A stretch of DNA of 64,000 bases from Trichosphaerium sp. ATCC 40318 (GCA_038496445.1 JALMLS010000159.1:1-64000); one strand, 5' to 3'. Shown: positions 4,123-52,889, counted from the stretch's first letter. Notes: a model not told the origin generated them from the letters alone. Made by a program: numbers and translations.

Positions 4123-5051
4123 CAGGGCTGAAACTAAACAAGGCTTTGCCTTAAATATAAAGGCATTTTTTTAAAATCAGGCATTGATGGCAAAAATCAG
4201 GCATTCAAAAATGGCAATGCCTGATTTTGCAAAGGCAATGGCAACAAAGGCAAAAATCAGGCATTGAAATAAGGCTTTGTTGGGCAATGCCTTAATTGTT
4301 GCAATGCCTTGTTTTTTTTAGGCAATGCCTGCCCTAGTTTTTTTATGCATTGCCAGCCTTAAATTTACAGGCACCAATTAGGCATTGGTTGTGTACACAT
4401 TGTACATTAAGGATACATTGGTTTAAGGTAAGTCTCCACCACACCAACACTTCCTAAACATTTTTTTTCATTTACTACTGACGTTTTATATAGACGACGT
4501 CACCACGCGCTTAGTATTTTATGGATTCTAACGAAACCACCGCCATTCGAACCGCAGCACCCAAATACACCCACAACAGTAGTACAGATACTTTAAACCA
4601 TTTTTCCAGTCCGCGAAAATTATACCAATAATTTGTTAATTTTTTTTTCTAGCTAAAGGTTTTTTTTCACATGGAGGACATTGAAGTTTTTTGTGTTTTG
4701 TGTACTGTACTTTAATAAATGAATCACTATTGTATGCCTATATAAAGCCTTGTTTTATGAGTATATGATGCCTGGGTTATGCCCAAAAATTGAGGGCAAA
4801 AATGCCTCATTGTTGCACAAAAAATGAGGCATTATTGGACCAACAATGCAGGCTATTTTAAGGCTAATTAGTGAACCAGTTGCTTGCTATTTGGCCCAAA
4901 TATGAGGCTCCAAAGCCCAACATTACAAGGCAATGCCTCATATTTGCTCATTTTTTTTGGCAAAAACAAGGCAATTTGGTGAAAAATAAGGCTGTATTTG
5001 GTGGCAAAAAAAAGGCTTTTACAAAAAAAGCCTTATTTAGTTTCAGCCCTG
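4123..5051. mobile_element. Non-autonomous TIR DNA transposon (929 bp)
   Basis: TIR CAGGGCTGAAACTAAACAAGGC / GCCTTATTTAGTTTCAGCCCTG with many GGCAWTGCC-type subterminal repeats. No 8-bp TSD; only a possible 2-bp CA duplication, so the superfamily is unresolved. Confidence 0.85.
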
Positions 5052-5946: not shown

Positions 5947-7876
5947 TTACACGTGGTGTCTACGCTCCAAAAGTATCGATAAATTTGTTAATCTAGCCAT
6001 TGGCTTGTACACCTTTTTGACATCTTCAATGCGAGTTCCTGGGGCCATTGATACTTTGAAATTATAACAAAGAAGTGACAGAAATATGACGAGTTCTGTT
6101 ACAGCAAGATTTTTTCCAGTACAGCTTCGTCTGCCGTATCCAAAGATGAGCATTGTTGGTTCTAAAAAACATGTCATATTCTCTTTACTTTATCTACCAA
6201 CCCGCTAGAGTTACGTACCACCATTGTCAAACCGATCAGGATTAAACTTGGCTGGATCTTTGTATATTGAAGTTGCACGAGCAGTATCCAACAATAGTTT
6301 TGTTCCTTTCTTTAAGAAGACAGCTAAAGAACCAATTAGGGTTTGTTAGAAAAAAAGCACATGGTGAACTTACGTCCGTTTTTAAGCTCTATTGTTTGGT
6401 CTTTAAGAGATTTAGCGGTGTGGAATCCATTCTGGCGCATACGCAAGACTTCTTGGACAAAGTTCTGTACAAGTTTCAATTTTTTGAACTTCGCATAGCT
6501 AAGATCATTCTGTGCCATGGTTGGTGCTACTTCCTCGTAAATCATGTCTTGGTACTTTGGATATAAACAAATATGATATACTGTAGAAACGAGAGCTCCT
6601 GAAGTAGTTTCTGTTCCAGCCAAGTAGAAACCAAGAGAGTTTTGAAAAACTGTTTCTCTATCAAAACCATGTGAAATCATCACCTATGACAAGAACATCA
6701 ATTTACACGTCATAGTCATCTTATAAAGTACTTCAATCATATTTTCTGGTTCATGATCATCACGCGACATTGATTTTGTAGCAGCAGTAATAACATTATC
6801 AACAAATGGATAGACAAACTCCTTGAGTTCTTTTTCAATTTCTACTTCAGCCTTGAAAAAAATAAGCCTCTGACAAAGAACTAGATATCACGCACTTTTG
6901 GTTTGAGGAATGGAATATGCCAATATGGTATCGTACTAAAACCTCGCTTAACCATCATATTAAAAAGCTTGTTAATCATGAGAGACATGCGTGTTTCAAC
7001 TTGTTTGCTGTCTTAAACGATAGGTTAGAACCAGGTTGTAAACCGGTTGTTTTGTACCGTTGAAAGACTTTGGCGATCCCATAGCTGCACGTGTAACCAC
7101 ACGAAGTGTTGTACGTGTTGTGATAATGTCTATGTTATCTATAGGTGTTTTTGAATCAGCTTGTTGCCCGAGCTCGTCCATCAACTCAACAAACACATTC
7201 ACAATAACTGCGAACTGTTTTTGTATTGCATTGTTTGTAAACTTTGGTGCGATCACTTTCTTTAGGTCTTTGTACTTTTGCCCAGATAGCGTACCCATTC
7301 CTTTCGCCAATCTCAACTCCTAATACATAAGGTACATAGCACAATAAGTAGTAGGTTCAGGTTACCTCAATCGCTTTCATGTTGTCAAAAAGAAAATTAT
7401 CGAAAGCTGTGCTTGGTCGTTGGAGTGCCACTTTGCGAATATCTTCGTATTCAGTGAGGACAACAAACTCAGAACCGAATACAGACAAGCTGTAGACGCT
7501 ACCATACTTCTTCTTCCACTAAAGTAAAACAGTCAAAACCAGCAATAGGAGAGCACCAGAACTCGGTTACTAACACGTGAGGTAAATGCGCTTCAACGTC
7601 GTTTGTGATGTCACGTGACAATTGTTTTGGTCTTTTTGCGCGAAAATAATGAAAAAAAACTGAACAAACACGTCTTTCAAAAAAACAAAAAGCGTTGTGT
7701 ACCTCTTTCAATGTTTCCTTCTGGTTTTTTTTCATTTTCCTCATATCAAACAAATTACCAACAATAGGCAGCTTTGGAGGGCCAGGTAACTTTTCGGAGC
7801 TATTGTTTCTCCGCAATAGCCACGTTGCGGCTACTACCAACACCGTTATGAGTGCTACAATAAACCAAAGTGCCAT
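5947..7876 (-). CDS. Cytochrome P450 (multi-exon, ER-anchored)
   Basis: N-terminal TM anchor plus PGPPKLPIVGN hinge, I-helix LAGTETT, K-helix QEVLR, PDRF, and heme motif FGYGRRSCTG. Confidence 0.93.
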
Positions 7877-9900: not shown

Positions 9901-10801
9901 TTAAAGGTAAGAAAATTGAATACCCATGGACTCAAAACCTTCTCTTGTTATAGCTGTACCTCCAGTGCACTTTACTACACGTTTTAGATTCTGCAGGTGC
10001 TTCAAGCAACCATTTGTAATCTGTGGGCAGTTGCTCAGGCTGAGTTGTTCCAGGTTGACCAATGTCTTAAAACCCAAGTCTGTTATCTGGGGGCAATTGT
10101 TAAGCTTAAGGTATTTGACATTGGTTAACGCTTTAATTCCATCATTCGTAGTAGAAAACCCCATAAGAATGTTTATAGTGTACATTGCATAGATGTTTAA
10201 GCCATGAGTCTTTTGGGAAAGAAAGACTAATCGCATGAACATCTTTGAGAGCTTTGATTCCTTCAACTGTAATAAAATAGCAACTATCAAGGGTAATTTT
10301 GTGTACGCCTACAAGACTTTGGAGTGCTTCATCTGTCACTGATGTGTGAGAAAGGTTAATAGTATGAACACCAGCAAGTGCTTTCACTCCTCTATCTGTT
10401 ATGGCGGTGCTACAAAGATCAATAGTATGAACACCTGCAAGAGATATAACACCTTCATCTGTAACTTTTAGGCAATGATTAAAGTCCATCGTATGAACTC
10501 CAGCAAATTGTTTAAGAATCTTGTCAGAAGGAAATCCGAAATCTCTTCCAGGTCTATCTAAGAAGATTTTTGTATGTTTAATGATTCCTTTGTGTTTTAC
10601 AACTTCTTTCACTTGTTTTTCTGCTATTATACTTATACTATGGTATCCAATAATGTCGTGAATGATAGAAGAAAGGATACGGCATGTTTGACAAGCTGCA
10701 AAGCGAGATTTGGTTAAGTGACTTAATATAATCGCTATAATCTCAGTAGGCATGTCCAGTAATGTTTTTTGAGTGCTGGAAATTATTTTAGAACTATACA
10801 T
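9901..10801 (-). pseudogene. Intronless F-box/LRR protein with a frameshift (or sequencing error) near 10180
   Basis: F-box LLDMPTEIIAIILSHL and LRRs LAGVHTIDL..ITDRGVKAL. The LRR register continues in another frame after GTA CAC TAT (expected GTA CAC ACT ATA, an apparent 2-nt loss). Confidence 0.75.
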
Positions 10802-11631: not shown

Positions 11632-13360
11632 ATGGCTAAAACGGTCAAGAAACAGACTATTAATGTTTTTATTCATGGTCACGTTGATAACGGAACATCA
11701 ACCCTTCTGGGCCACTTGTTGTATAAATGTGGTATAATAAGGGAACAAACAATACAAAGGATGAGAAAGAGATCAACCAGACCAAGTTACCAGGAGTATG
11801 CTTCCGCATTGCTTTGTTTCAACACATTCGCAAATCCATTGCGAAACTGTTATTCACTTGCCACCAATAACTGTAACGTACGTCATTACAAAGCCCCAAC
11901 GTTTGTTCAAAAACCAAGAGAGGATCGACATTGTGATTTTTGATAGAAAGGCCGCCACTTACAAGTTGGGTGACAAGACAACATTTTAGTTGCCATAACC
12001 TAAGTTTATTTTTTGTCAAGGTGTCTATTACTGCAGATACATACACCGAACCATTGAGTACAACATTGGCTAAATCATGTGATTGCATTTTATTGGTTGT
12101 TTCTGCAGCTCAAGGAATGTTTGAATCATCAATAGCTCGTCCAAATGGTACAATAATACATTTTTTATCATCTGCCAAGATACTCAGATTTTCAAACATA
12201 ATTGTTGCTGTTACGCATATGGATAGTATTTGTACTGGTGTTAAATATGATAAAGGAAGGTACATTGAAGTGGTGTCAGGAATCCAAAAGATAATGAGAA
12301 AGTACGTCATTTACCCCTTTTGTTTATCAACTCGTAGGTCAAAAGTGACCTCTTGTTTTCTAGCATAAACTACAACATTGAAGATGTTTTGTTTATTCCA
12401 GTTTCTGGAGCCCTTGGAGATAATTTGGTGGATATATCAAGTAACATGCCATGGTGGAAAGGATACACATTACTTGAAGCATTTGATACTATTGGCGAGA
12501 AGCGTGAAGTAACAACATCATTGAAAATGCCCGTCACTTTCACAGTGACAGTTAAAGATGTAGGATTTGTTGTAGCAGGAACCGTTATGTCAGGGTGCTT
12601 GCGAGTAGGAGACAATGTTATAATCGCTCCTACTGGATTAAAAACGAAGGTTATGGACATGGAATATGAACATACCAAGCATAAAGAAGCGCATAAAGGT
12701 ACTCATGTTGCATGTTTGTTAGAAGGTGTATCAAGAAAAGATGTCAAACGTGGATATGTCGTTCTTGCATTAATCCCAAATAAGAAACCACAGATTTTAG
12801 TTTCTGAGTTTACAGCACATGTTATTAGCGCATCAAATCATATTTATGAGGGCAACATGTTTCGCTTCGGTACAAATCCTTCAAAAAAAAAAAATCAAAA
12901 AAAAAATCCAAAAGGTTAAGTCAACACATGATACTTATCAGCATTCATTACATTTCTTTTGAAAACTGGCATCTTCTCGTCGATGATTTTTCTACCACAC
13001 ATAAGTTTTGTGTACTCTAGTTTAACAAACTTTTGGTAGGGCACACAAAGTCTGCAAAGAAGAAATGTTCGGTAACTAAAGTTATTGGGTGTTTGAAAGT
13101 AGAAACACATGAAGTGGTTGAACCAAAGCAACCAAAAAAACTATCAAATGATGAAATTGGCATCATACGGATAAAGCCATCTTCTCCTATGTACTGTTGT
13201 ACAAAAAAGGAGTCAAATTACTACGGAAGTCTGTTTCTCAGAGTAGAAGGACAGCATCAGGTAATCCACAGTATTTCCTCCTTTTTTTTAGGCCAATCCT
13301 CATAGACTACAATAGATTATTGCAGTTGGTTCTATCGTATCTGTCTCATATGTTGAATAA
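11632..13360 (+). CDS. Divergent eEF1A/HBS1-like translation-factor paralog with degenerate GTPase motifs
   Basis: INVFIHGHVDNGTSTLLGHLLYKCGII, LLVVSAAQGMFE, IVAVTHMD, FIPVSGALGDNLV..NMPWWKGYTLLEAFD, and domain II GFVVAGTVMSGCLRVGD. Ends IIAVGSIV..*. Confidence 0.85.
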
Positions 13361-16249: not shown

Positions 16250-17509
16250 TTATTTATATCCACACCAATATGATATGGAGAAATAAATACTGTTTGTGAA
16301 GTACCTGAACCAACCATATACAACTTTTTGAAGCATGTGCACAGGCAACAATAAGGTGCTAATTGATCGCATCATCAATGTGCTTTGATTTTCTTTGTTG
16401 GTTTTATCAAGTAGTCTCTTCATTCTCAGATCATTGTCTACGGCTTGTCCATCAACAAAAACACAGTGTATTGCAAGTCGTCCATTTTCATGCCACCTTT
16501 GGCATTCACCGTGTTGCTTACCAGCAACCCACATGGCCTTTGTCATGAGTTGTCCGTTTCCATACCATTCTTTGCATTCTCCATGTTTTTTATCATCAAC
16601 GTACATGTTATGTGACTTCAGTTGTCCATTTAAATACCATGACTTGAATTCACCATTCATTTTATCATCAACCATGTAACATAGTACCTCACGTTGTCCA
16701 TTTTCATACCAATATTGACATTGCCCATTTCTTTTATCATCAACACGCATTATCTGTACCCTAAGTTGTCCATTTTTATACCACTGTTTGTATTCACCAT
16801 TTCGTTTATCATCAGAAATGCCTTGGTCCTTAAGTTGTCCATTTTCATACCATGACTTGAATTCACCATTTATTTTATCATCAACATACACGCTATGTGA
16901 CTTCAGTTGTCCACTTTCATACCATGACTTGAATTCGCCATTTATTTTACCATCAACCATGTAACATAGTACCTCACATTGTCCATTTTTATACCACCTT
17001 ATGTATTCACCATGTTGTTTACCATCAACACACATGCTCTGTGTCATGAGTTGTCCGTTTTCAAACCACTTTCTGTATTCACCATGTTGTTTATCATCAA
17101 CATATGTGCCTTGTTCCTTAAGTTGTCCATTTTCATACCATGACTTTAATTCACCATTTATTTTACCATCAACCTTTGAGCATAGTACTTCCAGTTGTCC
17201 ATTTTTGTACCATCGTTTCTGTTCGCCATGTTGTTTACCATCAATCAGTATGTAGTCCATCTGAAGTTGGTTAGTCTCCTCATACCATACTTTAATAGAA
17301 CCACTCTTTACATATAGGTGAAGTTGTACTTTGCCACTTTTATACCATCTAATCCATGTTCCTTTCTTTTCTAGTGCTTCGTCAAAATGTGTATTGATTG
17401 CTGCTCTCTTTGATAGTGTATGAAATTTGGTGAACGCTTCAATATTGAAAGTGCAAATGTATTCTTGAATCTCACAAGGGAGATCCAACACACTCAAAGA
17501 ATGAGACAT
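16250..17509 (-). CDS. Intronless F-box-like plus MORN-variant (YwqK-like) repeat protein
   Basis: N-terminal VLDLPCEIQEYI, then about 12 repeats of 24 aa, WY(E/K)NGQL....Y.DGK.(H/N)GE. Confidence 0.85.
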   Translation of the reverse strand: MSHSLSVLDLPCEIQEYICTFNIEAFTKFHTLSKRAAINTHFDEALEKKGTWIRWYKSGKVQLHLYVKSGSIKVWYEETNQLQMDYILIDGKQHGEQKRWYKNGQLEVLCSKVDGKINGELKSWYENGQLKEQGTYVDDKQHGEYRKWFENGQLMTQSMCVDGKQHGEYIRWYKNGQCEVLCYMVDGKINGEFKSWYESGQLKSHSVYVDDKINGEFKSWYENGQLKDQGISDDKRNGEYKQWYKNGQLRVQIMRVDDKRNGQCQYWYENGQREVLCYMVDDKMNGEFKSWYLNGQLKSHNMYVDDKKHGECKEWYGNGQLMTKAMWVAGKQHGECQRWHENGRLAIHCVFVDGQAVDNDLRMKRLLDKTNKENQSTLMMRSISTLLLPVHMLQKVVYGWFRYFTNSIYFSISYWCGYK

Positions 17510-19319: not shown

Positions 19320-22300
19320 AAGCTAACTGGTTCCTTGTGCAAACAAAAGTAATTTATTGTAGCACTTATTACATTGTTGGTAGAAGCAAGGAGCAATGTC
19401 TGAACTACGTAACTTGCATAATAGTAAACTGTTAAGGAAAGATGTAAGCTATTCTTACATTCCTAAATCTCCAATACATCTTGAACTTTATTTGTGATGG
19501 ATACCTTCTTGTATTTTTTCTTGAGGTATTTTGCCTTTGACGTGTCTCCTAACAAACACTAAAAATCACGTGATTAATAAAAGGGGTAGTTGACATACCA
19601 CAAAAAACAAGAATAGGTGTTTTGGCACATGTTTTCATTTTTCTAATACTCTTGATCAACTTCTCTGCTGCTCGCTCATCTCCATCACCTTTTCGATATC
19701 TATTGGTGATGATACGTAACCTGTTGTTACAGAACCCTTTGAACTTATCAATCCATGCCAAAACCTCAGACGATGACTTCATTACCAATACCTTTGTATT
19801 TCTTAAGGAATGATGTATGTTATTTGTGTACCTCTGTCTTCTTTGGCCTGTTTTTAAGCATTTCCATAATCTTCTTGTTTTCAACTGATAGATTAGCGTC
19901 AACCCACAAAACAAGACATTTAGCATCCCTGTACTTGAGCTCATATGAATTGATATTGGCACTGTCTATTGCTTTATAGTACACAAGGTATCGTGGAAGA
20001 ATCTAAACCATGAAATAAGAACACGTGGTTGTTGAATAATGGCAGAAAGGCTAAGCGGTGATGTCTACATACTTGGTTTTTTGAAAATACAACGATCTCG
20101 TTTTGATCTATTTTATCATCAATGCCACATGGATTCCCAGTTTTTGATGAAGTGAGTACATAGTGAGAATCATAACCTTTCTGAAAACAATAAGAAGTCA
20201 AACAGAAAAAAAGAGTTGTACCTTGCATTCTTTTCCAAGAAGAGAGTTGGGATCACCTAGCACTGGTTGTTCTGTCGCTGGATAAGGATTTCCCATCATT
20301 ATCCATGATATCAACATGAGTGGATTTTTCTCTCCGTTCCATTCAGCATACTTTCTTCCTACCTCAATTGTTAATACAAGAATACAAAATTGGTTGAGTG
20401 AGAGCTTTGATTGTATTATGACTTACCACAATCGGGGTACTGAGTAAAGTAAATACCATCTCCTTTGTCAATTTTAGTTCATTAAACTAACTTGTTACTA
20501 AGCCATACCAAAGTATCCTGGATCTTTCTTTTTTGTATTCTCATGTGGCTCTCTAAAGTTGCTCCAAGCGATCTTAAAACTAGAATCCTACAATCTTAGG
20601 TTAACTATTTCTTGGTAGTAATGAGAATAAATGTGATATACCTCTGATGTACCGTGTAATCCAGGTATGAGGTTGATTTGCTCATTGCCTGAAACACGCA
20701 TCACATGGCTTTTCAAATGATTCAAAGTCCGTTCTTGTAATTTACGTGTATCTTCATCCACAGTGGAATTGTCATTCACATCTAAACTATTAGAAAAAGC
20801 TGACCAAGGGTGTGACTTGCCTGATTTTTTGGATTGAAGTACTTTCTTGACAAAAGTATTGTATTGCTCCTCGAATTTGTCTTCAAGTTTTGGATTGTTC
20901 AAGAATGCAATCTTCTCCAACTCATAAAATGAAGCACTGTCAGTCCCCATGAACTTATAAAACATGTTGCTAGCTCTCAAATACTCGTCATAACGTTCCT
21001 TATATCAATGCTTTAGTAAGAAAGTCATGGTATTCAAATGTGGTTTGTACCTTGCTTTTTTCATCTTTTGTGAGAAACGTGATTCGTAACCCAGGATACT
21101 TTTGAGGTGTTTCCCAGTCACCTATTTTCAGAAATCTTTCTCCATGCAAGCTACCCCACAGATTATATCTCGCATGTTTGAGTACAGGAAATCCTTCGTT
21201 TAAATGACTCTCAGTGACAACATGTTCTAAGAAATAATCAGTTTGTTAACTTGGAAATATGCCATCTGGTTGTATAATATATGACAACTACACGTGTATA
21301 AATGTATGCCTAATACACTCACTTGTCTTCTTGCACTCATATGAACTGTTTGTAACTTCAATAAACTCTCCAAATTGTATGCTGACTGGACATAGCGGAA
21401 CTGGAGTGATGTCCAAAGGTTTTAGGTATGTATCAAGAGATTCCTAAAAATGTCAATGTTTAAACTTCTAGTTCATGTTATTACCATCCATAGCCGTGGT
21501 GCTATGCCTCTAATTACAACTTTGATGCTGTGATCAATATAATATAATGTGATGATATTGCCATAGAAATCAGAGAGTACAATCAAGTTTGAAAACAAAC
21601 GAAACTCTTTGTTTTGGAACTCTATTTTTAGCATTTAGTATCTTACCATCATAACCGTTCTTGGCGTACTTCTCAATCTTCTCTGCAAGTCATTAAATAT
21701 GTCTATAGGTAGATCTTGCGAGTTAAAAGTGTATGCCAAGAACTTTGAAACATGTGGTATGACCTCATATTGATCAGGTAGTGACTAACACGTGATATTG
21801 TTAGTTTTGATTGTTATGGAATATGAAATACGCCATACTATTTTATTGGTTTCCTTGTTTATGGTGACTGTTTCTACCACTTTATGTTCAACTTTAGAGT
21901 CTGTTGTAGGTGTGTACGATAATATCTTCCACTTTGTTGGTGATTCATATAAAGAGAATATTTGTGGGTTCTTGTTCTTTGCCTGAACTAATGTAATACT
22001 TTGCTCCTTTTGGGTCAATGGAGGAAAGTAAAACATATCAGCTTTAGGTAATAGCGATACAATAAGGTATCCATCAGCGCCATACACAACCTGAATAAAT
22101 ACATTGACAATGAGTTGTAGAGTACATGCAATATCTGTTACCTTTTCTTCTTCTGTCAAGCGAACACAGAACGACATTTGTACCAAGAATTTCATCACCT
22201 GCTTCACTTCACGTTTATTGCATTTTGGAAATAGCTTTGAGATTCGAGATTTAGCTTCTGACTCAGTGAATACGGCACGATGATTGTGAGTGTTGTTTTT

Positions 22301-25140
22301 GATCAATCTATCAAGATGTTCTTTGGGTGCTAGAAATGCGCTCATGATATGAGATAGAATAGGAGGGTTCAAACATAGCATGTACGATGACTAAACACAG
22401 ACAAGTCAGTTGTTTAAGCAAGCATACTACTCATTTGAGAAGCACACACCTCGTCAAACATGATGCTACCAATGGAATGAAGGTAATTCAATGCTGCAAC
22501 CAATTCTATTGGAGACATTTTACATGTCTTGGGTATCACTTCTAATACTTTCCTCCTAATTAAATACTTGATCAGCAAAAGCAAGACCCACTACAGCTAA
22601 CACAACATACACTGATATGATGTTACCCTTTAGGGTATCCTTGTTTGTGATTGTATTCTCAAGTGCTTTTTTTATGTCCATGTAGATCAATGGTACTTTT
22701 GGATATTGGGTCTTCAAGTACTTGGCTTGCTGATCCAATAATTTGACAAGAGCACTTGTTCCTAAACAGTAAGGATAAGCGATTGTAAAAAAAGTTATAA
22801 AGGTGGTACCGTCTAAGCACAAGTACTGTACTAGTAATGGTCCAATAGGAAGCAATGATTGTTTATTGGCCTTGATATCACCTAAAAAGATATCTAATTT
22901 GGATCCAAATACAATCACTGAGTATAACTTTGGGTCTTGATCATGTAGTATCTCATTTAAAGCCCGACACCAATATTTGAGGTGTTCCTGTTGCTCTTTG
23001 ATTGATGTTGACAAGTCAATCTAAAGGTAATGAATGATAAGGAAACAAGTGTGATATTGGTGTACTATGAACTTACAACGATGATATAAATTGTGAGTTG
23101 CCTTGCTAAAAAGTACTTATGTAATCCTTTATATTCTGTCTGTCCAGCAAAGTCTAACACTGTGAATGATACGCCATGGAACCTAAAGCACATTAAAAAT
23201 TATGACACCACAACTTAGAACATACGAGAGATGTGATGTATCAAAACCAATTGTTGAATCCGCTATTCTATTTGTTTCCTTTGCCAATGTCCTCACAAGT
23301 GTTGTCTTGCCTAATTAATATTTAGTGTATCAGGCATCCTACTTTGATTAAATACCTGCTCCTTCATGACCTACAACCATTATTTTGGCTTCTAATTGCT
23401 CAACAAAATCGTAGTTGTTATGACTCACTCCATCAACAACATGATGTTTCATTAAACTAGCCTTTTTACTGAGGTCACTCCAATAAATGCGTTTAAACTG
23501 TTGTATCATTTTGTCTGATATTTTGTCCTTTTTTAAGGGTATCACACGTGCTCCAGAAAGACCACGTGCCATAGTTGTTACTATTTAAAGAATTAATTAG
23601 TAAGTATAAAGATAGTGGTATAAAAGACACCGCACCTTCATGAAGTGATATCTCAGTACCTTTTTTACAAAGGTCATAGATAAATACAATATCACCAGAA
23701 TGACCTGGTTCAGAGCTATCTTGGAGTTGCATAGTAACATTGTCACAGTTTTGGAGGCTTTTAAAATAAAATTCAAATACCACTCTTCTTTTTCTATCTT
23801 TTATACCTTTTACAGTTAGTTCATTGATATCAAGGATAGTATTATCTGGATTCGGAAACAATTTCTTGAGATCTCTCTCAGAATTCTCAACTGTAACGTT
23901 GTCAAAACACACAGTAACTGGTGTTATATCTTCTTGTGCATCATTGCTAGGGAAAAAGGATTCTTTGTAGAATGTTTTATCCATATTGTTAGAAAAGGCA
24001 ACCTGGTCTGGTTTTCCAGCAATACTTTTCTGTGTTTTACCTACTGCCTTAGCATTCTCAAATTTACCAATGTATTTACGACCGTCTGGCCAATACTTCT
24101 CACCAATACCATGGAACTTATCGTTGTCAAATTGTCCAATGTACTTGGTACCATTTTGATAAAAATACACTCCACCGCCCTTATACTGGTTGTTCTTAAA
24201 TTGACCTTTGTATTTGAGAGTACCATCTGGGTAATACTCCTCACCATCACCATGAAACTTATTGTCCTTAAACTGACCTTTGTATTCGAGAGTATCACCT
24301 TGATTGACTTTGATAATATCTTTTATATGATACAGCTCACCAAAACCGTCACGCTTACCATTCTTTACCTCTCCCCTATATCTTAGATGACCTCCTACCT
24401 CATGCTCTTCTTTTATATCCAAACCTTTGTGAGTACAATAAGCACAACAAAGTAAAGAAAAATCTTTTAGGCTTTGAAAATATCACGAAAAAGTATGAGT
24501 TTTCTTGCGATTCCCTCACTTTGTAAAAAAGTGAAATAATGCATAAGTAGCATCCCCTATGCACAGTGATGCCAAACAATGTTATTAATTGGTTTTTGAA
24601 GTGAGAGTAAACTTCTTTGGACTCTTTCACACAAAAAGATTTAATAATGTGTGGGTTGCCTTGACTATGTACGGACATACTAAACCAAACACTTTTGTTT
24701 GTTTTAGTGAAAGCGCCAAAATTGTGCGAAAAAAGCGCTCCAGCGAATTTTTCTCGCAAAAAAGTGTGGTCCTGGGCAACCCACGCCGGAAAGTGGAAAC
24801 GTTTCTCATAAAAATCGTAATATCACGTGACAAACAAAAAAAAATTGTAAAGCTGAAAATGGAGGAACTTCACTTACCATTGTCTGTACTATCAATGTTG
24901 GCCATATTTAAATGCAGAACAGTAGATTAAACCGAGTTCGAGATATTTTCGAACTAAAACAGAAAAGTTAAGCTTAAAACCACTGCAAGCGCAAAGAAAG
25001 TGCTATTAAATAACAATACCGGTACAATAGCCAATAATCGTCTCTTTTTTTGTAGAATAATCCAATAAGAATGTTGTACGAGACTTAGTTACACTGTAAA
25101 TAGTTCAACGAACAAGGTGAAACGAGAATATGATTATTTT
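19320..25140. repeat. Inverted segmental duplication, partner about 46700-53055
   Basis: Near-identical exons, introns and flanks on opposite strands, apart from the MORN array and a non-homologous stretch just 5' of the gene. The spacer 24900-25110 also matches 5500-5730. Confidence 0.9.
19463..24430 (-). CDS. Roco-family copy 2: MORN - Roc GTPase - COR - PARP-type ART - receiver-like (start codon unresolved)
   Basis: GHEGAG|KTT, STIG, DFAGQ, GSKLD; LCLNPPILSHIM (COR); LHGT, GYF|GDGIYFT, NEIVVF..Q|ILPRYLVYY (ART); VLWVD..IITN..PILVFC (receiver-like). TAG at 19463-19465. No in-frame ATG immediately 5' of the MORN exon. Confidence 0.85.
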
Positions 25141-29146: not shown

Positions 29147-30865
29147 ATGGCATGCTCGTTACAGAGATTTGCTTCGCAAACAGAAACATGGCAACCTATC
29201 CCAAAATCGCTTTATAAATGCGTCAGTAGACCTCATTGTATTCAAAACCACGAAATGTACAACATAACAGACAAACCAGCCAAATGGGAATGTCTTAAAT
29301 GCTCTAAGCCACTCAAAGAGTGTATAATATGCGTAAAATGCGATAATTGGACGTATTGCGTCCAATGTGTTAAAGAAATTGATAAACACAAACATCCGAC
29401 AATAAAAATAGCTTCAAACGCGTGGAACTGTAGTTGTTGTACAAATACGACAACTTTGAGTACGATTGGTTTTCATCAAACGCTAAACGTTATTTCATTT
29501 GTTTTTTCTTAGATCAGAGCAAACACACGCTTACGTTATTACCTAGGCCCGCGTTATTCTTGTGGAATATGCGAAGATGCTGATATTTGCCAAAAGTGCT
29601 GCTTCTTGCCTTACGACATGACAACAGACCCTTCAGAGCATAATAAACCAGCTAGGACCCACAAACATACGTTCAATCTGGTATCAAGCTTTAAAGGATG
29701 GGTTTGTAAAGAATGTAAAAAGAAAAGTGTTGACACAAACGAAGATCGTTTTCATTGTGGTATTTGTGATGATTATGATGTTTGTAGTAAGTGCTATTGG
29801 ACAGAAAAACTAGAACACGATCACGTGCTTAAATATGCAAATAGCATATCAAAGTGTAGGCAGTGTACTATGGCTCTAGGTACGGCTTTTCATCTTGAGA
29901 CTCGTCTACTTTTCATTGTTTCAATTGAAACTCTTTTTCTAGGTCCTGAAGATGAGAGATACCGTTGTAGTTCTTGCTGTAGCTATGATTTATGTACTAC
30001 ATGCTATGGAAAAAGAAATATATCCTCAAACAATGGAGCAAAGTGCTGTAGCATTGAACTTTTGAATGCATTTGAGGAATCAGCAATCAAAGATCCTGAT
30101 AAAAATCCTTACACTCATAGCCTCTCACAGATACCAAATGAGATTTTAGATAATATATTGGTATACCTTGGTGAAAGAGATATATGTATGTACACTATAA
30201 TATCAATAGAAGGATTATACGTATCAAAACAAATGTGGCTTCTTAGAATTTGGAAAATATATGGAACTATCCCTGATGACTTCCTTGATATCCCAGAACC
30301 TCTTCCACTCAAATATAAACGTATCAAACACCTTAAGGAACTTTTTAAGTATAAACTACATGAACCAAATGAAGAAGACCTAAGTTTTTGGAGGCGTATT
30401 CTTTCATCTGATGTAATCTTTAATAATGCCTATTATTTACAACAATTGGTTCGAAGCACTTCCAAGAAGATACTTTTTACAAAATGTAATCGTTACTTCT
30501 ATTTGAAACACTATAGAGCTTTACCTACACTATGCTTTCCAAAGAAGAGCAAGTTTGTAAGTGCAGTTTTTGTTCATAGAGAGAAAAGACCTCAATACAA
30601 GCGTCTTAATGCATTTGGTGTTTTTCTTCCAGAATCAGAACTTTGGTCACGTGACATGGCAACAATATTAACGTTGGAGAGAGATATTATACTTATTGAT
30701 GATAAAGGCGATAAATCAAGGCTTGTAGAGATGTACGAGTACAATCATGGGTTTTTTGAACGTCCTCATTTTCTGTTGATTGGAATATCACGGTTTGATC
30801 GCAGATCACCACGGACTCTACCTATGTGTCCACCCCGATACAGACGAAAACCAAAGGAATACTAA
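29147..30865 (+). CDS. ZZ/DC1-type zinc-finger repeat plus F-box protein
   Basis: About four CxxC..RF/YxCxxCxDYDxCxxC modules with HxH, followed by F-box SLSQIPNEILDNILVYL. About two short introns. Confidence 0.75.
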
Positions 30866-45982: not shown

Positions 45983-47356
45983 CAATACGATCGCCGTATT
46001 TTACTTAGTGCGGTCTCATTGCTACTCACCAAGGAGCTATAAAATCGAGTACAAATTAATAATGATTTTTACATGCTAACTTACTAGCATCACGTGCGAA
46101 TGATGGCACGTTCATGCGTAAGAGGAGTATTAAACGTGAGATAACGTTAAAATCTTAAAGAAAATTCCAAGCGCTTCCAAAGTATCTTGCGCTGAGTGTA
46201 TGGTATTAACATGCACGTATAATCCGTTTTAGAGTATAACAGACAACTGTTGAACCTAGAGGTCATCAGAGACGCCAACAGAACTACATACGCTAATGTA
46301 CCAAATAAAACATAATTGGTTAAAAACACGTGGTCGCAATAATCTGTATGTGTTGTACAATCGTCATGTGGATTTTATTTTCTCCAGAACTGACAAGATC
46401 CATCAGATCTTATAGCTTTTGAGACAGATCTTGCAAGAACTAATAAGATCTTGTAAGAACTAACAGAAGTTGCAAGATCTGTCAGATCTGACTAAACACG
46501 AAAACCAAAAGTCACAAACAGCAAATAGTTGCACAGTTTTGCAAACCTGAATGATACGGACAATATCCAGTGAATCTATGATATTGGCGTGATGTGTATG
46601 TGATTGGTTTTCAGTAGCCTATTTATGGCTGTTCACTAGCCACTTTAAGTTGTGAAATAAAATAATGTGCAATAGTGAGAGTGACTAATTCTGATTTCTG
46701 GTCACCTTGTTCGTTGGACTATTTACAGAGTAACTAACTGTTATTCAACATTCTTGTTGGATTATTCTACAAAAAAAGAGACGATTATTGGCTATTGTAC
46801 TGGTATTGTTATTTAATAGCACTTTCTTTGCGCTTGCAGTGGTTTAAGCTTAACTTTTCTGTTTTAGTTCGAAAATATCTCTAACTCGGTTTAATCTACT
46901 GTTCTGCGTTTAAATATGGCCTACACTGATAGTCTAGACAAGGGTAAGTGAAGTTCCGCTCCACAAATTTCAGCTTGAAATTTTTTTTTTTGTTTGGCAC
47001 GTGACAATTTTCATGAGAAACGTTTCCACTTTTCGGTGCGGGTTGCCCAGGACCACTTTTTTGCAAGAAAAATTCGCTGGAGCTTTTTTTGCACAATTGT
47101 GGTGCTTTCACTAAAACAAACAAAAGTGTTTGGTTTAGTATGTCCGTGCGCATAGGCAAGGCAACCCACATTATTACATCTTTTTGTGTGTAAGACTTTT
47201 GATATCACTAAAAAAACCAATTAAAAACTCTGCCTCTGAATGTGTTTGAACCATTAGACTACGTGTAAAAATGCATACAAAGGTGGAATGGTTTAACTAA
47301 AAATCAACATATTTTCAACGCCATGAATTGCATGTTAAAACAAGATAGAACGTGGC

Positions 47357-50300
47357 ATGTTAACAATTCAAAGCCTAAAAGATTTTTCTTTACTTTGTTG
47401 TGCTTATTGTACTCACAAAAAGTATGAACTAGGAGGTCATCTCGCATATAGGGGAGAGGTAAAGAATGGTAAGCGTGACGGTTTTGGTGAGCTGTATCAT
47501 ATAAAAGATATTGTCGAAGTCAATCAAGGTGATACTCTCGAATACAAAGGTCAGTTTAAGGACGATAAGTTTTATTGTGATGGTGAGCTTTGTTACTTAT
47601 ATGGTACTCTCGAATACAAAGGTCAGTTTAAGAACAATAAGTTTCATGGTGATGGTGAGAAGTATTACCTAGATGGTACTCTCAAATACAAAGGTCAGTT
47701 TAAGAACAATAACTTTTGTGGTGATGGTGAGCTGTATCGCACAAATGGTACTCTACGATACAAAGGTCAGTTTAAGGACGACAAGTATCATGGTGATGGT
47801 GAGCTGTATCGCACAAATGGTACTTTCATGTACAAAGGTCAGTTTAAGGACGATAAGTATCATGGTGATGGTGAGCGGTATCGCACAGATGGTACTCTCA
47901 TGTACAAAGGTCAGTTTAAGGACGATAAGTTTCATGGTGATGGTAAGCGGTATTGGGAAGATGGTACTCTCATGTACAAAGGTCAGTTTAAGGATGATAA
48001 GTTTCATGGTGATGGTGAGGAGTATCATCTAGATGGTACTCTACGATACAAAGGTCAGTATAAAGACGATAAGTATCATGGTGATGGTGAGGAGTATTAC
48101 AATGGTACTCTCGAATACAAAGGTCAATTTAGGAACAACCAGTATACGGGTGTTGGAGTGTATTTTTATCGAAATGGTACCAAGTACATTGGACAATTTA
48201 TCAACAACAAGTTCCATGGTATTGGTGAGAAGTATTGGCCAGATGGTCGTAAATACATTGGTAAATTTGTGAATGATAAGGCAGTAGGTAAAACACAGAA
48301 AAGTATTGCTGGAAAACCAGACCAGGTTGCCTTTTCTAACAATATGGATAAAACATTCTATCAAGAATTCTTTTTCCCTAGCAATGATGTACAAGAAGAT
48401 ATAACACCAGTTACTGTGTGTTCTGACAATATTAAAGATGAGAATTCTGAGAGAGATCTCAAGAAATTGTTTCCGAATCCAGATAATACTATCCTTGATA
48501 TCAATGATCCAACTGGAAAAGGTAGACCAGATGGAAAAAGAAGAATGGTATTTGAATTTTATTCTAAAAGACTCTACCAAAACTGTAACAGTATTATTTC
48601 GCAACACCAAGATAGCTCTGAATCAGGTCGTTCTGGTGATATTGTATTTATCTATGACCTTTGTAAAAAAGATCCTGAGATATCACTTCATGAAGGTGCG
48701 GTGTCTTTTATACCACTATCTTTATACATGATTAATTCTTTAAATAGTAACAACTATGGCACGTGGTCTTCCTGGAGTACGTGTGATACCCTTAACAAAG
48801 GACAAAATATCAGACAAAATGATACGACAGTTTAAACACATTTATTGGAGTGACCTCAGTAAAAAGGCTAGTTTAATGAAACATCATGTTGTTGATGGAG
48901 TGAGTCATAACAACTACGATTTTGTTGAGCAATTAGAAGCCAAAATAATGGTTGTAGGACATGAAGGAGCAGGTATTTTGTCAAAGTTGGATGAGTGATA
49001 CACTAAATATTTATTAGGCAAGACAACACTTGTGAGGACATTGGCAAAGGAAACAAATAGAATAGCGGATTCAACAATTGGTTTTGATACATCACATCTC
49101 TCGTATGTTCTACACTTATAGAACCATAGGTTTAATGTGCTTTAGGTTCCGTGGCGTATCATTCACAGTGTTAGACTTTGCTGGACAGGTAGAATACAAA
49201 GGATTACACAAGTACTTTTTAGCAAAGCAACTTACCATTTACATCATCGTTGTAAGTTTGTAGTGCACCAACATCGCACTGTTTCCTTATCATTAACTTT
49301 AGATTGACTTGTCAACATCAATCAAAGAGCAACAGGAGCACCTCAAATATTGGTGTCGGGCTTTAAATGAGATACTACATGATCAAGACCCAAAGTTATA
49401 CTCAGTGATTGTATTTGGATCCAAATTAGATATCTTTTTAGGTGATATCAAGGCCAATAAACAATCATTCCGCCCTATTGGACTATCACTAGTACAGTAC
49501 CTGTGTTTAGACGGTACTGCCTTTATAACATTTTTACAATCGCTTATCCTTACTGTTTAGGAACAAGTGCTCTCGTCAAATTATTGGATCATCAAGCCAA
49601 GTACTTGAAGACCCAATATCCAAAAGTACCATTGATCTACATAAACGTAAAAAAAGCACTTGAGAATACAATCACAAACAAGGATACCCTAAAGGGTAAC
49701 ATCATATCAGTGTACGTTGTGTGTTAGCTGTAGTGGGTCTTGCTTTTGCTGATCAAGTATTTAATTAGGAGGAAAGTATTAGAAGTGATACCCAAGACGT
49801 GTACAATGTCTCCAATAGAATTGGTTGCAGCATTGAATTACCTTCATTCCATTGGTAGCATCATGTTTGACGAGGTGTGTGCTTCTCAAATGAGTAGTAT
49901 GCTTGCTTAAACAACTGACTTGTCTGTGTTTAGTCATCGTACATGCTATGTTTGGACCCTCCTATTCTATCTCATATCATGAGTGCTTTTCTAGCACCCA
50001 AAGAACATCTTGATAGATTGATCAAAAACAACAATCACAATCATCGTGCCGTATTCACTGACTCAGAAGCTAAATCTCGAATCTCAAAGCTATTTCCAAA
50101 ATGCAATAAACGTGAAGTGAAGCAGGTGATGAAATTCTTGGTACAAATGTCGTTCTGTGTTCGCTTGACAGAAGAAGAAAAGGTAACAGATAGTGTATGT
50201 ACTCTACAACTCATTGTCAATGTATTTATTCAGGTTGTGTATGGCGCTGATGGATACCTTATTATATCGCTATTACCTAAAGCTGATATGTTTTACTTTC

Positions 50301-52889
50301 CTCCATTGACCCAAAAGGAGCAAAATATCACATTAGTTCAGGCAAAGAACAAGAACCCACAAATATTCTCTTTATCTAAATCACCAACAAAGTGGAAGAT
50401 ATTATCGTACACACCTACAACAGACTCTAAAGTTGAACATAAAGTGGTAGAAACAGTCACCATAAACAAGGAAACCAATAAAATAGTACGGCGTATTTCA
50501 ACAATCAAAACTAACAATATCACGTGTTAGTCACTACCTGATCAATATGAGGTCATACCACATGTTTCAAAGTTCTTGGCATACACTTTTAACTCACAAG
50601 ATCTACCTATAGACATATTTAATGACTTGCAGAGAAGATTGAGAAGTACGCCAACATGAGCGGTTTATGATTATGATTAGATGCTAAACACTAAAATAGA
50701 GTTCCAAAACAAAGAGTTTCGTTTGTTTTCAAACTTGATTGTACTCTCTGATTTCTATGGCAATATCATCACATTATATTATATTGATCATAGCATCAAA
50801 GTTGTCATTAGAGGCATAGCACCACGGCTATGGATGGTAATAACATGAAATAGAAGTTTAAACATTGAAATTTTTAGGAATCTCTTGATACATACCTAAA
50901 ACCTTTGGACATCACTCCAGTTCCGCTATGTCCAGTCAGCATACAATTTGGAGAGTTTATTGAGGTTACAAACAATTCGTATGAGTGCAAAAAGACAAGT
51001 GAGTGTATTAGGCATACATTTATACACGTGTAGTTGTCATATATTATACAACCAGATGGCATATTTCCAAGTTAACAAACTGATTATTTCTTAGAACATG
51101 TTGTCACTGAGAGTCATTTAAAAGAAGGATTTCCTGTACTCAAACATGCGAGACATAATCTGTGGGGTAGCTTGCATGGAGAAAGATTTCTGAAAATAGG
51201 TGACTGGGAAACACCTCAAAAGTATCCTGGGTTACAAATCACGTTTCTCACAAAAGATGAAAAAAGCAAGGTACAAACCACATTTGAATACCATGACTTT
51301 CTTACTAAAGCATTGATATAAGGAACGTTATGATGAGTATCTGAGAGCTAGCAACATGTTTTATAAGTTCATGGGAACTGATAGTGCTTCATTTTATGAG
51401 TTGGAGAAGATTGCTTTCTTGAACAATCCAAAACTTGAAGACAAATTCGAGGAGCAATACAATACTTTTGTCAAGAAAGTACTTCAATCCAAAAAATCAG
51501 GCAAGTCACCTTCTTGGTCAGCTTTTTCTAATAGTTTAGATATGAATGATGATTCTACTGTGGATGAAGATACACGTAAATTACAAGAACGAACTTTGAA
51601 TCATTTGAAGAGCCATGTGATGTGTGTTTCAGGCAATGAGCAAATCAACCTCATACCTGGATTACACGGTACATCAGAGGTACATCACATTATTCTCATC
51701 AGAACCAAGAAATAGTTAACCTTAGATTTTATTTAGGATACTAGTTTTAAGATCGCTTGGAGCAACTTTAGAGAACCACACGAGAATACAAACAAGAAAG
51801 ATCCAGGATACTTTGGTATGGCTTAGTAACAAGTTAGTTTAATGAACTAAAATTGACAAAGGAGATGGGATTTACTTTACTCAGTACCCTGATTGTGGTA
51901 AGTTGACGACATAGCGTTATGTTGAGTAGTCCTGTATTAACAATTGAGGTAGGAAGGAAGTATGCTGAATGGGATAAAAAGGAGAAGAATCCGTGCATGT
52001 TGATATCATGGATAATGATGGGAAAACCTTATCCAGCAACAGAAAACCCTGTACCAGGTGATCCTAAAAGTCTTCTTGGAAAAGAATGCAAGGTACAACT
52101 CTTTTTTCATTGACAAGTACTTCTATTACGCCTGTCACTTCTTTTTATTGTTTTTTTCTCAGAAAGGTTATGATTCTCATTATGTACTCACTAAATCAAC
52201 ATCTGGGTTTCTGTGTGGCATTGATGACAAAATAGATCAAAACGAGATTGTTGTATTTTCAAAAAACCAAGTATGTAGACATCACCACACTTAGCCTTCT
52301 GCCATTATTCAACAGTGTTCTTATTTCATAATCTAGATTCTTCCACGATACCTTGTATACTACAAAGCAATAGACAGTACCAATATCGAGTCATATGAAC
52401 TCAAGCACAGGGATGCTAAATGTCTTGTTTTGTGGGTTGACGCTAATCTATCAGTTGAAAACAAGAAGATTATGGAAATGCTTCAAAAAAGGCCAAAGAA
52501 GACAGAGGTACACAAACCAAATAAAGCGATTCATCTAAGAACTACAAAGGTATTGGTAATGAAGTCATCATCTCAGGTTTTGGCATGGATTGATAAGTTC
52601 AAAGGGTTCTGTAACAACAGGTTACGTATCATCACAAATAGATATCGAAAAGGTGATGGAGATGAGCGAGCAGCAGAGAAGTTGATCAAGAGCATTAGAA
52701 AAATTAAAACATGTGCCAAAACACCTATTCTTGTTTTTTGTGGTATGTCAACTACCCCTTTTATTAATCACGTGATTTTTAGTTAACACATAGTGTTTGT
52801 TAGGAGACACGTCAAAGGCAAAATACCTCAAGAAAAAATACAAGAAGGTATCCATCACAAATAAAGTTCAAGATGTATTGGAGATTTAG
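47357..52889 (+). CDS. Roco-family copy 3 (apparently intact): MORN array - Roc - COR - PARP-type ART (H-Y-E) - pseudo-receiver
   Basis: Spliced ORF: KIMVVGHEGAG|KTTLVRTL..STIGFD..VLDFAGQVEYKGLHKYF..VIVFGSKLD (Roc); LCLDPPILSHIM, LPIDIFNDLQRRL (COR); LHGT / PGYF|GDGIYFT..KYA / YDSH / QNEIVVF..Q|ILPRYLVYY (ART); VLWVDAN..IITNRY..AAEKLIKSIR..PILVFC. TAG at 52887-52889. Confidence 0.9.
47543..48115 (+). repeat. Eight highly similar MORN units (7 x 72 bp plus 1 x 69 bp)
   Basis: YKGQFKxxKxHGDGExYxxxGTLx repeated eight times, with near-identical scaffold DNA. Confidence 0.92.

Follow-up and report, generated by a model that had tools for sequence, protein, structure and literature searches.

The window analysed here, a 64,000-nucleotide stretch of Trichosphaerium sp. 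DNA, contains one intact, spliced gene (gene A) for a GTPase of the Roco (LRRK2) family that carries a PARP-type ADP-ribosyltransferase (ART). The domain order of the protein is MORN repeats, fast-evolving linker, Roc, COR, PARP-type ART and a CheY-like domain. The features of gene A and of its two paralogs in the window are as follows.

47357-52889, plus strand: complete coding sequence of gene A, with 20 exons and 19 GT-AG introns, 1,494 aa in one frame
48696-48747, 48973-49017, 49103-49145, 49252-49302, 49514-49560, 49712-49768, 49875-49933, plus strand: introns 1-7
50183-50233, 50486-50530, 50646-50699, 50837-50877, 50999-51094, 51271-51322, 51680-51736, plus strand: introns 8-14
51816-51861, 51898-51952, 52093-52162, 52271-52336, 52743-52803, plus strand: introns 15-19
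47429-48286, plus strand: MORN array, aa ~25-310, about 12 units of 24 aa, wholly in exon 1
48287-48923, plus strand: MORN-Roc linker, aa 311-505, without known domain, fast-evolving
48927-49640, plus strand: Roc GTPase, aa 507-682, exons 2-6
48957-49025, plus strand: Roc G1 GHEGAGKT, aa 517-524
49071-49082, plus strand: Roc switch I STIG, aa 540-543
49174-49188, plus strand: Roc G3 DFAGQ, aa 560-564
49417-49431, plus strand: Roc G4-like GSKLD, aa 624-628
49641-51135, plus strand: COR region, aa 683-1046, exons 6-13, directly C-terminal of Roc
51095-51270, plus strand: exon 13, aa 1033-1091, end of COR and first ART strands (structural ranges of the relative P0004 mapped onto the model)
51154-52375, plus strand: PARP-type ART, aa ~1053-1344, exons 13-19
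51665-51667, plus strand: ART H1206, within LHGTSE (1205-1210)
51873-51875, plus strand: ART Y1241, within GDGIYFT (1237-1243)
52244-52246, plus strand: ART E1323, within NEIVVF (1322-1327)
52415-52886, plus strand: CheY-like pseudo-receiver, aa 1358-1494, exons 19-20
52637-52639, plus strand: Asn1432, at the phospho-acceptor position
19466-24482, minus strand: paralog B, full-length copy, ~95% identical in exons and introns
1968-3395, minus strand: paralog C, a fragment with MORN, linker and part of Roc

The boundaries given in the original prediction are exact: the gene starts with the ATG at 47357, the first in-frame start past a stop at 47336-47338, and its TAG stop ends at 52889. Removal of the 19 introns (41-96 nt, all GT-AG) brings every motif listed in that prediction into one frame, leaving 4,485 coding bases without premature stop or frameshift, with all splice-site pairs intact. 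Spliced contigs from one public run, X1, are 85-99% alike to gene A and have 9 of the 19 introns removed as predicted. Introns 7, 10, 11, 12 and 14 are spliced out exactly; for introns 3 and 19 the skipped length minus the inserted letters equals the intron length; and for introns 1 and 4 loose contig ends continue into the adjoining exon. Because they are only 85-99% alike, the contigs may derive from paralogs or from a sister strain. The single transcript that had been expected is thus seen as splicing at these nine introns and not as a single contig, none of those in X1 covering the entire gene. Support for the other 10 introns comes from the reading frame, from consensus splice sites, from paralog B (which keeps all 19 GT-AG pairs) and from a gap-free alignment of the ART to relatives over exon junctions.

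The spliced protein matches independent database proteins by BLASTP at E 3e-74, and a profile made from the relatives only matches the gene A model at E 6e-90, so the match is far beyond chance. In the best of these relatives, P0004, colinearity begins at Roc and extends to the C-terminus, over model residues 507-847 and 931-1492 (E 3e-74); a Mastigamoeba balamuthi hypothetical protein, P0007, is colinear with residues 512-784 and 922-1486. P0004 reads as a single unbroken ORF, and its contig ends in an A-run (P0004 and P0038 are Logan contigs). In an environmental gene, L002, three called ORFs are joined via two GTAAAC...TTAG introns into a 2,329-aa Ank-Roc-COR-ART frame. The family is small and lineage-restricted, with relatives in amoeba-type organisms; it keeps a Roc-COR-ART-REC core and swaps its N-terminal repeats, MORN in gene A and ankyrin in L002. 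The architecture had been put forward as undescribed: none of the papers open to searching describes Roc-COR plus PARP, but the combination is not unique to this locus, being present in P0007, P0004, P0038 and L002. The same ART clade also occurs in chlamydial and gammaproteobacterial metagenome-assembled genomes.

Exon 1 alone matches Pfam MORN at 5.2e-30 (nine stretches) and MORN_2 at 4.5e-08, and tandem MORN repeats are present; a Pfam scan of the linker gave no match. For Roc, G1, switch I and G3 are intact beside a G4-like motif, and exon 4 alone matches Pfam Roc at 0.0049. The Roc of P0004 aligns with that of gene A over the motifs (BLASTP 9e-27), matches Pfam Roc at 1.5e-12, and has LRRK2 Roc (5e-06) and the C. 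tepidum Roco as its closest PDB matches. The G4 motif of gene A is SKLD, against the canonical [NT]KxD.

The folds of COR, ART and receiver were judged on the predicted structure of P0004, which is about 25-31% identical to the gene A protein (mean pLDDT 71; 65-94 over residues 190-580). The COR of gene A is colinear with P0004 residues 336-683. The predicted structure over 135-683 aligns with LRRK2 1330-1860 (422 residues, Z 14.6), and the M. barkeri RocCOR aligns with model residues 136-507. Against the C. tepidum RocCOR crystal structure the Foldseek E-value is 2.9e-14 over 582 columns; across LRRK1/2 and bacterial RocCOR the matches span 580-750 columns, with E 6e-15 to 3e-14 and Z 14.6-14.9. 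Pfam COR-A (0.078 in P0004, 0.038 in P0010) and COR-B (0.16 in P0010) are sub-threshold, in the right position and order; the gene A COR exon alone had no match in the PDB. A COR domain directly C-terminal of Roc is recognised by predicted fold, in the relative P0004. Since exon 13, whose joint at intron 12 is seen in X1, codes for both the end of COR and the first ART strands, the COR/ART boundary lies inside one exon. Between COR and ART the relatives have a CxxC...CxxGH motif, of which the gene A protein has lost one Cys.

By its sequence the ART is a PARP-clade domain with a complete H-Y-E triad. The triad of the original prediction holds: through the family profile, H1206, Y1241 and E1323 align with the PARP4 motifs, HG, GIYF and DE(I/F)VV matching residue for residue between the relatives' profile and the human PARP4 ART (4.2e-10). 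PARP4 is the best sequence match of the family ART (1.8e-11 and 4.2e-10). Relatives exceed the Pfam PARP (PF00644) threshold, with P0009 at 6.4e-14, P0003 at 8.3e-13 and P0004 at 1.5e-12. The best fold match of P0004 model residues 712-968 is PARP10 (Z 16.0, rmsd 2.7, 176 residues), and the model also matches tankyrase, PARP13, PARP15, PARP3, PARP1 and PARP4. H, Y and E are kept in the gene A protein and in seven of the nine aligned relatives; P0014 is without the Glu motif and P0010 without Tyr and Glu. The argument of the original prediction that Cys at the PARP1 K903 position points to mono- rather than poly-ADP-ribosylation found no support.

At the C-terminus, P0004 model residues 1007-1131 form five beta/alpha units and match the PorX receiver (Z 13.8, rmsd 2.1, 113 residues); exon 19 folded alone, at a pLDDT of 44, was uninformative. 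Strand 3 ends in ITN in each of the four family members with the domain (the gene A protein, P0004, P0038 and P0007); strand 4 ends in Cys in the first three and in Asn in P0007, and the receiver Lys position is not conserved. Among exon pieces and relatives the region had no Pfam match, Response_reg included; the nearest Atlas feature clusters were OKR_DC_1_N and Response_reg. Given the Asn at the phospho-acceptor position, the unkept quintet residues and the lack of a Response_reg match, we place the domain outside true receivers, as a pseudo-receiver: the CheY fold of the predicted receiver-like domain stands in the P0004 model, with Asn in place of its phospho-acceptor Asp, which leaves the usual site unable to take a phosphate.

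The three copies in the window are one intact (A), one damaged (B) and one fragment (C). Paralog B is without gene A's ATG, has seven MORN units fewer, its array being short by 72 and 429 nt, both in frame, and has lost 2 nt from exon 19; paralog C has no equivalent of 48980-49231 or of anything past exon 5. Comparison of gene A with paralog B shows purifying selection on Roc, COR and ART, with a dN/dS of 0.2 for Roc and of 0.20 for the ART (28 synonymous and 26 nonsynonymous changes). The linker has 33 nonsynonymous and 2 synonymous changes, a dN/dS of 4.2 (binomial p 0.006 for the excess over neutrality), a signal made up of 35 substitutions relative to a copy that is possibly a pseudogene.

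A possible objection is that the single-gene model is an artefact in which over-eager intron calling has fused adjacent MORN, Roc-COR and ART-REC genes. With intron 1 retained, the exon 1 frame stays open for another 45 codons before the stop at 48833-48835; the exon 13/14 junction (51244-51333) is uncovered by X1 contigs; and P0004 and P0007 are without MORN. Yet in X1 a loose end passes from the last part of exon 1 straight into the first part of exon 2, the downstream exons have no in-frame start and need none, exon 13 is shared by COR and ART, paralog B keeps every splice site, and P0004 reads through its own Roc, COR and ART as one ORF. We consider such a fusion most improbable: the continuous frame, the splicing in X1, the colinear single proteins elsewhere and the span of exon 13 make this one gene, in the order MORN-Roc-COR-ART-receiver-like fold that had been predicted. 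It is also very unlikely that gene A is a recently dead copy that makes no protein, as its two damaged neighbours and the lack of an RNA run of the exact organism might suggest, since its ATG, open frame and splice-site pairs are all in place and one X1 contig is at least 99% alike to it. A further alternative concerns the ART, which could be a catalytically silent pseudo-PARP serving as a scaffold or a sensor of NAD or ADP-ribose, like PARP13 or TASOR. Both of these are among the structural matches of P0004 (Z 15.6 and 14.8), and P0010, the most distant relative, has lost the Tyr and Glu motifs. Silence nonetheless appears unlikely for gene A, where, as in most of the aligned relatives, the triad is kept together with the adjoining NAD-site motifs; the triad also aligns throughout with that of the active PARP4 ART, and the domain is under constraint.

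We think it likely that the intact gene A works by the following mechanism. The MORN array and linker would provide localisation or ligand input. The Roc-COR tandem would act as a nucleotide-dependent conformational and dimerisation switch, by analogy with LRRK2, DAPK1 and bacterial Roco proteins, and would control an NAD+-consuming ART in place of a kinase. The pseudo-receiver would probably be an autoinhibitory or oligomerisation module acting on the ART. On this comparison we infer that ADP-ribosylation by the gene A protein may be GTP-gated.

What such a switch might serve can be read in two ways. Dictyostelium Roco kinases have roles in chemotaxis and development, and it is quite possible, if short of probable, that the same protein carries out ordinary membrane or cytoskeleton signalling, with MORN tethering it to membranes and ADP-ribosylation replacing phosphorylation as the output. 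MORN repeats serve generically to bind membranes or proteins (Pfam), known eukaryotic Roco proteins are signalling proteins (PMC6337361), and Roc, COR and ART are all conserved by selection. Tandem duplication with decay in the window, the high dN/dS of the linker and the varying N-terminal modules of the relatives instead form a pattern seen more typically in families of receptors that are under pressure to diversify. Signalling in conflict or defence would plausibly fit this evolution of the family, and the decaying tandem paralog cluster, the linker ratio above 1 and the swapped sensor repeats are circumstantial points for a part in defence or non-self recognition. Rather more doubtfully, gene A may belong to an amoeba-type family of innate immune receptors, in which a diversifying MORN/linker (or ankyrin, or small-GTPase-like) sensor would perceive an intracellular bacterium or giant virus, Roc-COR would become GTP-loaded and oligomerise, and the ART, once released, would ADP-ribosylate invader or host targets or drain NAD+. 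Legionella-like and chlamydial bacteria, as well as giant viruses, have amoebae as their natural hosts. If the immune-receptor reading were true, these proteins would be functional counterparts of NLR and TIR systems built on a GTPase, and the amoebae would have a class of immune receptor that is new for eukaryotes; the ART clade in chlamydial and gammaproteobacterial genomes would then reflect an arms race, or an exchange of genes, between host and symbiont.

Most work on Roco proteins is prompted by LRRK2 and Parkinson's disease, and one of its central open questions is by what means Roc-COR governs the enzyme joined to it. A Roco with a PARP-type ART for its kinase would offer an independent read-out of the same switch, through NAD+ use and ADP-ribose marks. 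To PARP research it brings an architecture coupled to a GTPase, and a pseudo-receiver as partner, neither of which appears in the papers searched.

Like LRRK2, LRRK1 and the Dictyostelium Roco kinases (Roco group 2), the gene A protein joins repeats, Roc-COR and a C-terminal enzyme in one polypeptide; unlike them, it has a PARP-type ART rather than a protein kinase as its output, MORN rather than ARM/ANK/LRR repeats, and a pseudo-receiver rather than WD40 at its end. None of the three Roco groups of PMC6337361 has an ART or MORN. With PARP4 and the mono-ART PARPs (PARP10, PARP14, PARP15) it shares the catalytic fold and the H-Y-E triad, whereas in this family Roc-COR and a short Cys/His motif lie ahead of the ART; Pfam found no BRCT, vWA, macro, WWE or PARP regulatory (helical) domain in P0004 and P0007, the two relatives with both Roc and PARP. 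The likeness to NLR/STAND receptors is one of analogy only, in that one chain combines sensor repeats with an NTP switch and an effector and the genes are locally duplicated and decaying; the switch here is a Ras-like Roc GTPase, Pfam found neither NACHT nor NB-ARC in gene A exon pieces, P0004 and P0007, and we claim no membership. Kaur et al. (2021, PMC8195603) interpret the LRR-Roc(AP-GTPase)-COR proteins of bacteria, whose C-terminal effectors vary, as counter-invader conflict systems; the effector domains number at least 24, and those named in the passage used here are TIR, DRHyd, caspase, trypsin, FGS and GT4, without PARP. Gene A differs from these prokaryotic systems in being eukaryotic and spliced and in having MORN and a pseudo-receiver, and it resembles them in its variable repeat sensor, Roc-COR switch and exchangeable effector; in eukaryotes too, as in bacteria, Roc-COR would thus drive interchangeable effectors.

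Gene A lies in eukaryotic DNA of ~36% G+C in which coding stretches change frame every 100-400 bases. Two further copies were found in the window:

47357-52889, forward strand: gene A, encoding MORN, linker, Roc, COR, PARP-type ADP-ribosyltransferase (ART) and CheY-like regions
19466-24482, reverse strand: paralog B, a full-length copy ~95% identical to gene A in exons and introns
1968-3395, reverse strand: paralog C, a fragment restricted to MORN, the linker and part of Roc

Introns were called by a dynamic-programming search for GT-AG introns followed by hand curation, and the calls were checked against relatives. The final model divides gene A into 20 exons separated by 19 introns of 41-96 nt, and the spliced protein is 1,494 residues long. 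The reading frame opens with the ATG at 47357, the earliest start downstream of an in-frame stop, and finishes with the TAG ending at 52889; these limits coincide exactly with those of the original prediction, and all of the motifs quoted there (GHEGAGKT, STIG, DFAGQ, GSKLD, LHGTSE, GDGIYFT, NEIVVF) are in frame in the spliced model.

A single public sequencing run, X1, contains gene A sequence (5% of sampled words); it consists of contigs, which carry no transcript ends, strand or expression level. Its contigs on gene A are spliced and 85-99% alike. Introns 7, 10, 11, 12 and 14 are skipped exactly, with GT..AG ends. Two joints match intron lengths: that from 49090 to 49157 (23 letters between) differs from the window by 43 bases, the length of intron 3, and that from 52743 to 52812 (7 letters between) by 61 bases, the length of intron 19. 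One loose end, at 48694, continues into sequence that matches the beginning of exon 2; upstream of another, at 49303, lies the end of exon 4. Taken together, the skips, joints and loose ends mean that nine of the 19 introns have been seen removed, in transcripts from gene A or from a close paralog or sister strain. Intron 8 (50183-50233, forward strand), 51 nt long, contains no stop codon and keeps the frame, and its splice signals are good in gene A and paralog B alike; judging from its sequence, its retention would add 17 residues to COR with the frame kept, a possible alternative isoform.

A possible objection to the model is that Roc-COR and the ART are the products of separate genes: the exon 13/14 junction lies outside all X1 contigs, and no single contig extends over the whole gene. 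Exon 14, searched exhaustively with HMMER against 1.84 billion cluster representatives, matched just 17 clusters; since the top identity was 42%, the source organism's own proteins are absent from the searched collection. Two relatives, P0004 (1,131 aa, from a Logan contig) and P0007 (1,065 aa, a Mastigamoeba balamuthi hypothetical protein from EukProt), both pass Pfam for Roc and PARP. Word-based searches added P0037 and P0038, and precomputed Pfam results give P0038 the Roc and PARP pair too. The profile search of proteins returned Roc-only proteins alone, because its words were taken from the first 500 residues. By BLASTP the spliced model matches P0004 over residues 507-847 (9e-27) and 931-1492 (3e-74), with the alignment running as far as residue 1125 of 1131 in P0004, and matches P0007 over residues 512-784 and 922-1486; both relatives are thus colinear with gene A from Roc through the C-terminal residues. 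The P0004 reading frame is uninterrupted on a single contig of 3,856 nt with an A-run at its end. When the structural limits of P0004 are mapped to gene A, COR ends near residue 1046 and the ART starts at residue 1053-1078. Exon 13 (residues 1033-1091) contains both of these limits, and therefore Roc-COR and the ART cannot be separate genes. Exon junctions within the ART align to the relatives without gaps.

The MORN array is significant from exon 1 alone (Pfam, 5.2e-30). Pfam searches with single exons gave nothing beyond MORN and a weak Roc match, the remaining pieces being too short. The Roc motifs of gene A align to those of P0004, P0038 and P0007, and the best solved relatives of the P0004 G domain are LRRK2 Roc (5e-06), C. 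tepidum Roco and M. barkeri Roco. In the relatives, Pfam did not recognise COR at significance, its COR matches (0.038-0.16) falling below threshold though at the right place and in the right order, and a phmmer search of PDB with the COR exon of gene A gave no match. Because COR lacked a significant Pfam match, we predicted the full-length structure of P0004 (19-row alignment, mean pLDDT 70.9), and the fold comparisons for COR, the ART and the C-terminal domain were made on this predicted structure of a relative. Foldseek ranked the LRRK1, LRRK2, C. tepidum LRR-Roc-COR and RocCOR crystal structures at the top (E 6e-15 to 3e-14, 580-750 aligned columns), with PARP catalytic domains next. A second, independent structure search over 48,161 representative chains equated LRRK2 1330-1860 with residues 135-683 of the P0004 model. 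Between COR-B and the ART the relatives share a CPxC ... CxxGH motif, which from its sequence may bind zinc; the corresponding region of gene A (50920-51153, forward strand) has Ser for the second Cys (CPVS).

Residues 712-968 of the P0004 model align with PARP10, tankyrase, PARP13, PARP15, PARP3, PARP1 and PARP4, with Z 14-16 and an rmsd of 2.5-3.9 for the top PARP10, tankyrase, PARP13, PARP15 and PARP3 rows. Human PARP4 is matched at 4.2e-10 by a profile built from A4, our alignment of the ART regions of the relatives, with HG paired to HG, GxGvYF to GSGIYF and DEIVVF to DEFVVY. The same profile matches the spliced gene A model at 6e-90, and these two matches together place the full triad in gene A at H1206, Y1241 and E1323. 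By sequence the ART may yield mono-ADP-ribose, poly-ADP-ribose or plain NAD+ hydrolysis, and the argument for a mono-ADP-ribosylating enzyme from the PARP1 K903 position was set aside as unsupported. The spliced model, colinear relatives, profiles and P0004 fold thus confirm the one-frame MORN-Roc-COR-ART gene of the original prediction and its domain reading.

The receiver-like fold that had also been proposed was borne out as a fold, but not as a canonical receiver. The C-terminal domain is of the CheY fold (P0004 model 1007-1131 against the PorX receiver: Z 13.8, rmsd 2.1, 113 residues). Pfam gave it no Response_reg match, and the phospho-acceptor Asp position at the end of strand 3 is Asn, within an ITN motif, in the gene A protein and in all three relatives with the domain. 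The receiver Thr/Ser position is Cys in the gene A protein, and the Lys position is unconserved. We accordingly call this domain a pseudo-receiver. Exon 19 folded by itself was unusable (pLDDT 44). As a lead only, a language-model feature search placed nearest to the C-terminal domain the CheY-like wing domain of Orn/Lys/Arg decarboxylases and response regulators.

Paralog B keeps all 19 splice-site pairs of gene A. It has no ATG at gene A's start, its MORN array has lost seven units through in-frame deletions of 72 and 429 nt, and in exon 19 a 2-nt deletion brings in a premature stop; unless that exon 19 deletion is an assembly error, paralog B is probably a pseudogene of recent origin. Paralog C lacks any counterpart of 48980-49231 and of everything beyond exon 5. 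Nei-Gojobori comparison of A with B, which involves small numbers and one pair of copies, gave dN/dS values of 0.42 for COR and 0.87 for MORN; Roc and the ART each stood at 0.20, the ART with 28 synonymous and 26 nonsynonymous changes. For the linker (residues 311-505; 48287-48923, forward strand) the ratio was 4.2, with 33 nonsynonymous and 2 synonymous changes (binomial p 0.006 against neutrality). Within this one pair and its small numbers, the enzymatic core is under constraint and the input region at the N-terminus is diversifying. Patchy gene conversion is suggested by the synonymous divergence between A and B, which ranges from 0.018 to 0.216 along the gene, a more than 10-fold variation.

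Further genes in the window lie at 16250-17509 (reverse), 10142-10801 (reverse), 12353-12919 (forward) and 29606-30865 (forward); they include a MORN_2-repeat protein (1e-46, separate from gene A), an F-box/LRR protein, an EF-Tu domain-2 exon and a ZZ-finger protein. By eye, an ORF from 53437 (forward), shortly after the end of gene A, resembles cytochrome P450 at its N-terminus.

The family extends to other sensor combinations. On metagenome contig L002 (2472-9625; GC 54%), three adjacent, separately called ORFs encode Ank repeats, Roc and PARP; introns at 4677-4776 and 6886-6949 (both GTAAAC...TTAG) join them into one Ank-Roc-COR-ART frame of 2,329 residues. P0010, a distant relative directly behind an LRR ORF on contigs L003-L005, has a COR-like region and an ART without the Tyr and Glu motifs. 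Genes are dense on these contigs, which carry a P450, a kinase and many short ORFs without annotation; a giant virus origin for them was considered and dropped, as the viral contigs searched gave no relative of the family.

The ART clade alone is also found at the C-terminal end of long proteins from environmental sequences, which carry extracellular-type domains such as LRR, EGF, CUB and WSC. Loci L011, L013, L026, L066, L048 and others carry it, 25-33% identical, at the C-terminus of very long contig-filling ORFs, with LRR and EGF repeats in L011, L013 and L026, EGF in L066, and PARP as the sole Pfam match in L048. The ART query also matched L027 and L038 (CUB, EGF, fibronectin type II) and L070 (WSC, thrombospondin type 1) by tblastn; these three had no Pfam PARP match at 1e-4. 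The long proteins look like receptor-type proteins of protists with the ART as intracellular output. Bacterial MAGs contribute further members, from Gammaproteobacteria (L086, L087, L090) and Chlamydiae/Parachlamydiaceae (L088, L089, L091), fused to eukaryote-like Tyr/Ser-Thr kinase, TPR, ankyrin, Sel1 and SidM-like domains. Such eukaryote-like fusions are typical for effectors of amoeba-associated intracellular bacteria, and the bacterial members point to host-symbiont gene exchange, in either direction.

We conclude that the architecture of gene A is real, conserved and under selection. Full-text searches for Roco, Roc or COR with PARP or ADP-ribosyltransferase found no paper describing such a fusion, and neither PARP nor MORN appears in the standard Roco review, whose three groups are LRR-only, kinase-bearing and DAPK (PMC6337361). 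The eukaryotic Roc-COR-PARP-pseudo-receiver family thus appears undescribed, its public members being nameless or labelled hypothetical. By analogy with the kinase-bearing Rocos, GTP-gated ADP-ribosylation would be the most likely mechanism. The defence role originally proposed is plausible, and we hold it only tentatively. For the ROCOs of brown algae, a candidate role as immune receptors has been put forward (PMC11378527). The closest concept is that of the bacterial LRR-AP-GTPase-COR proteins, which one study credits with at least 24 alternative C-terminal effector domains and interprets as counter-invader systems (PMC8195603). Given this bacterial effector swapping and the brown-algal proposals, the general logic was anticipated, and gene A stands as a variant within the Roco family with a new output, not as a new kind of system.
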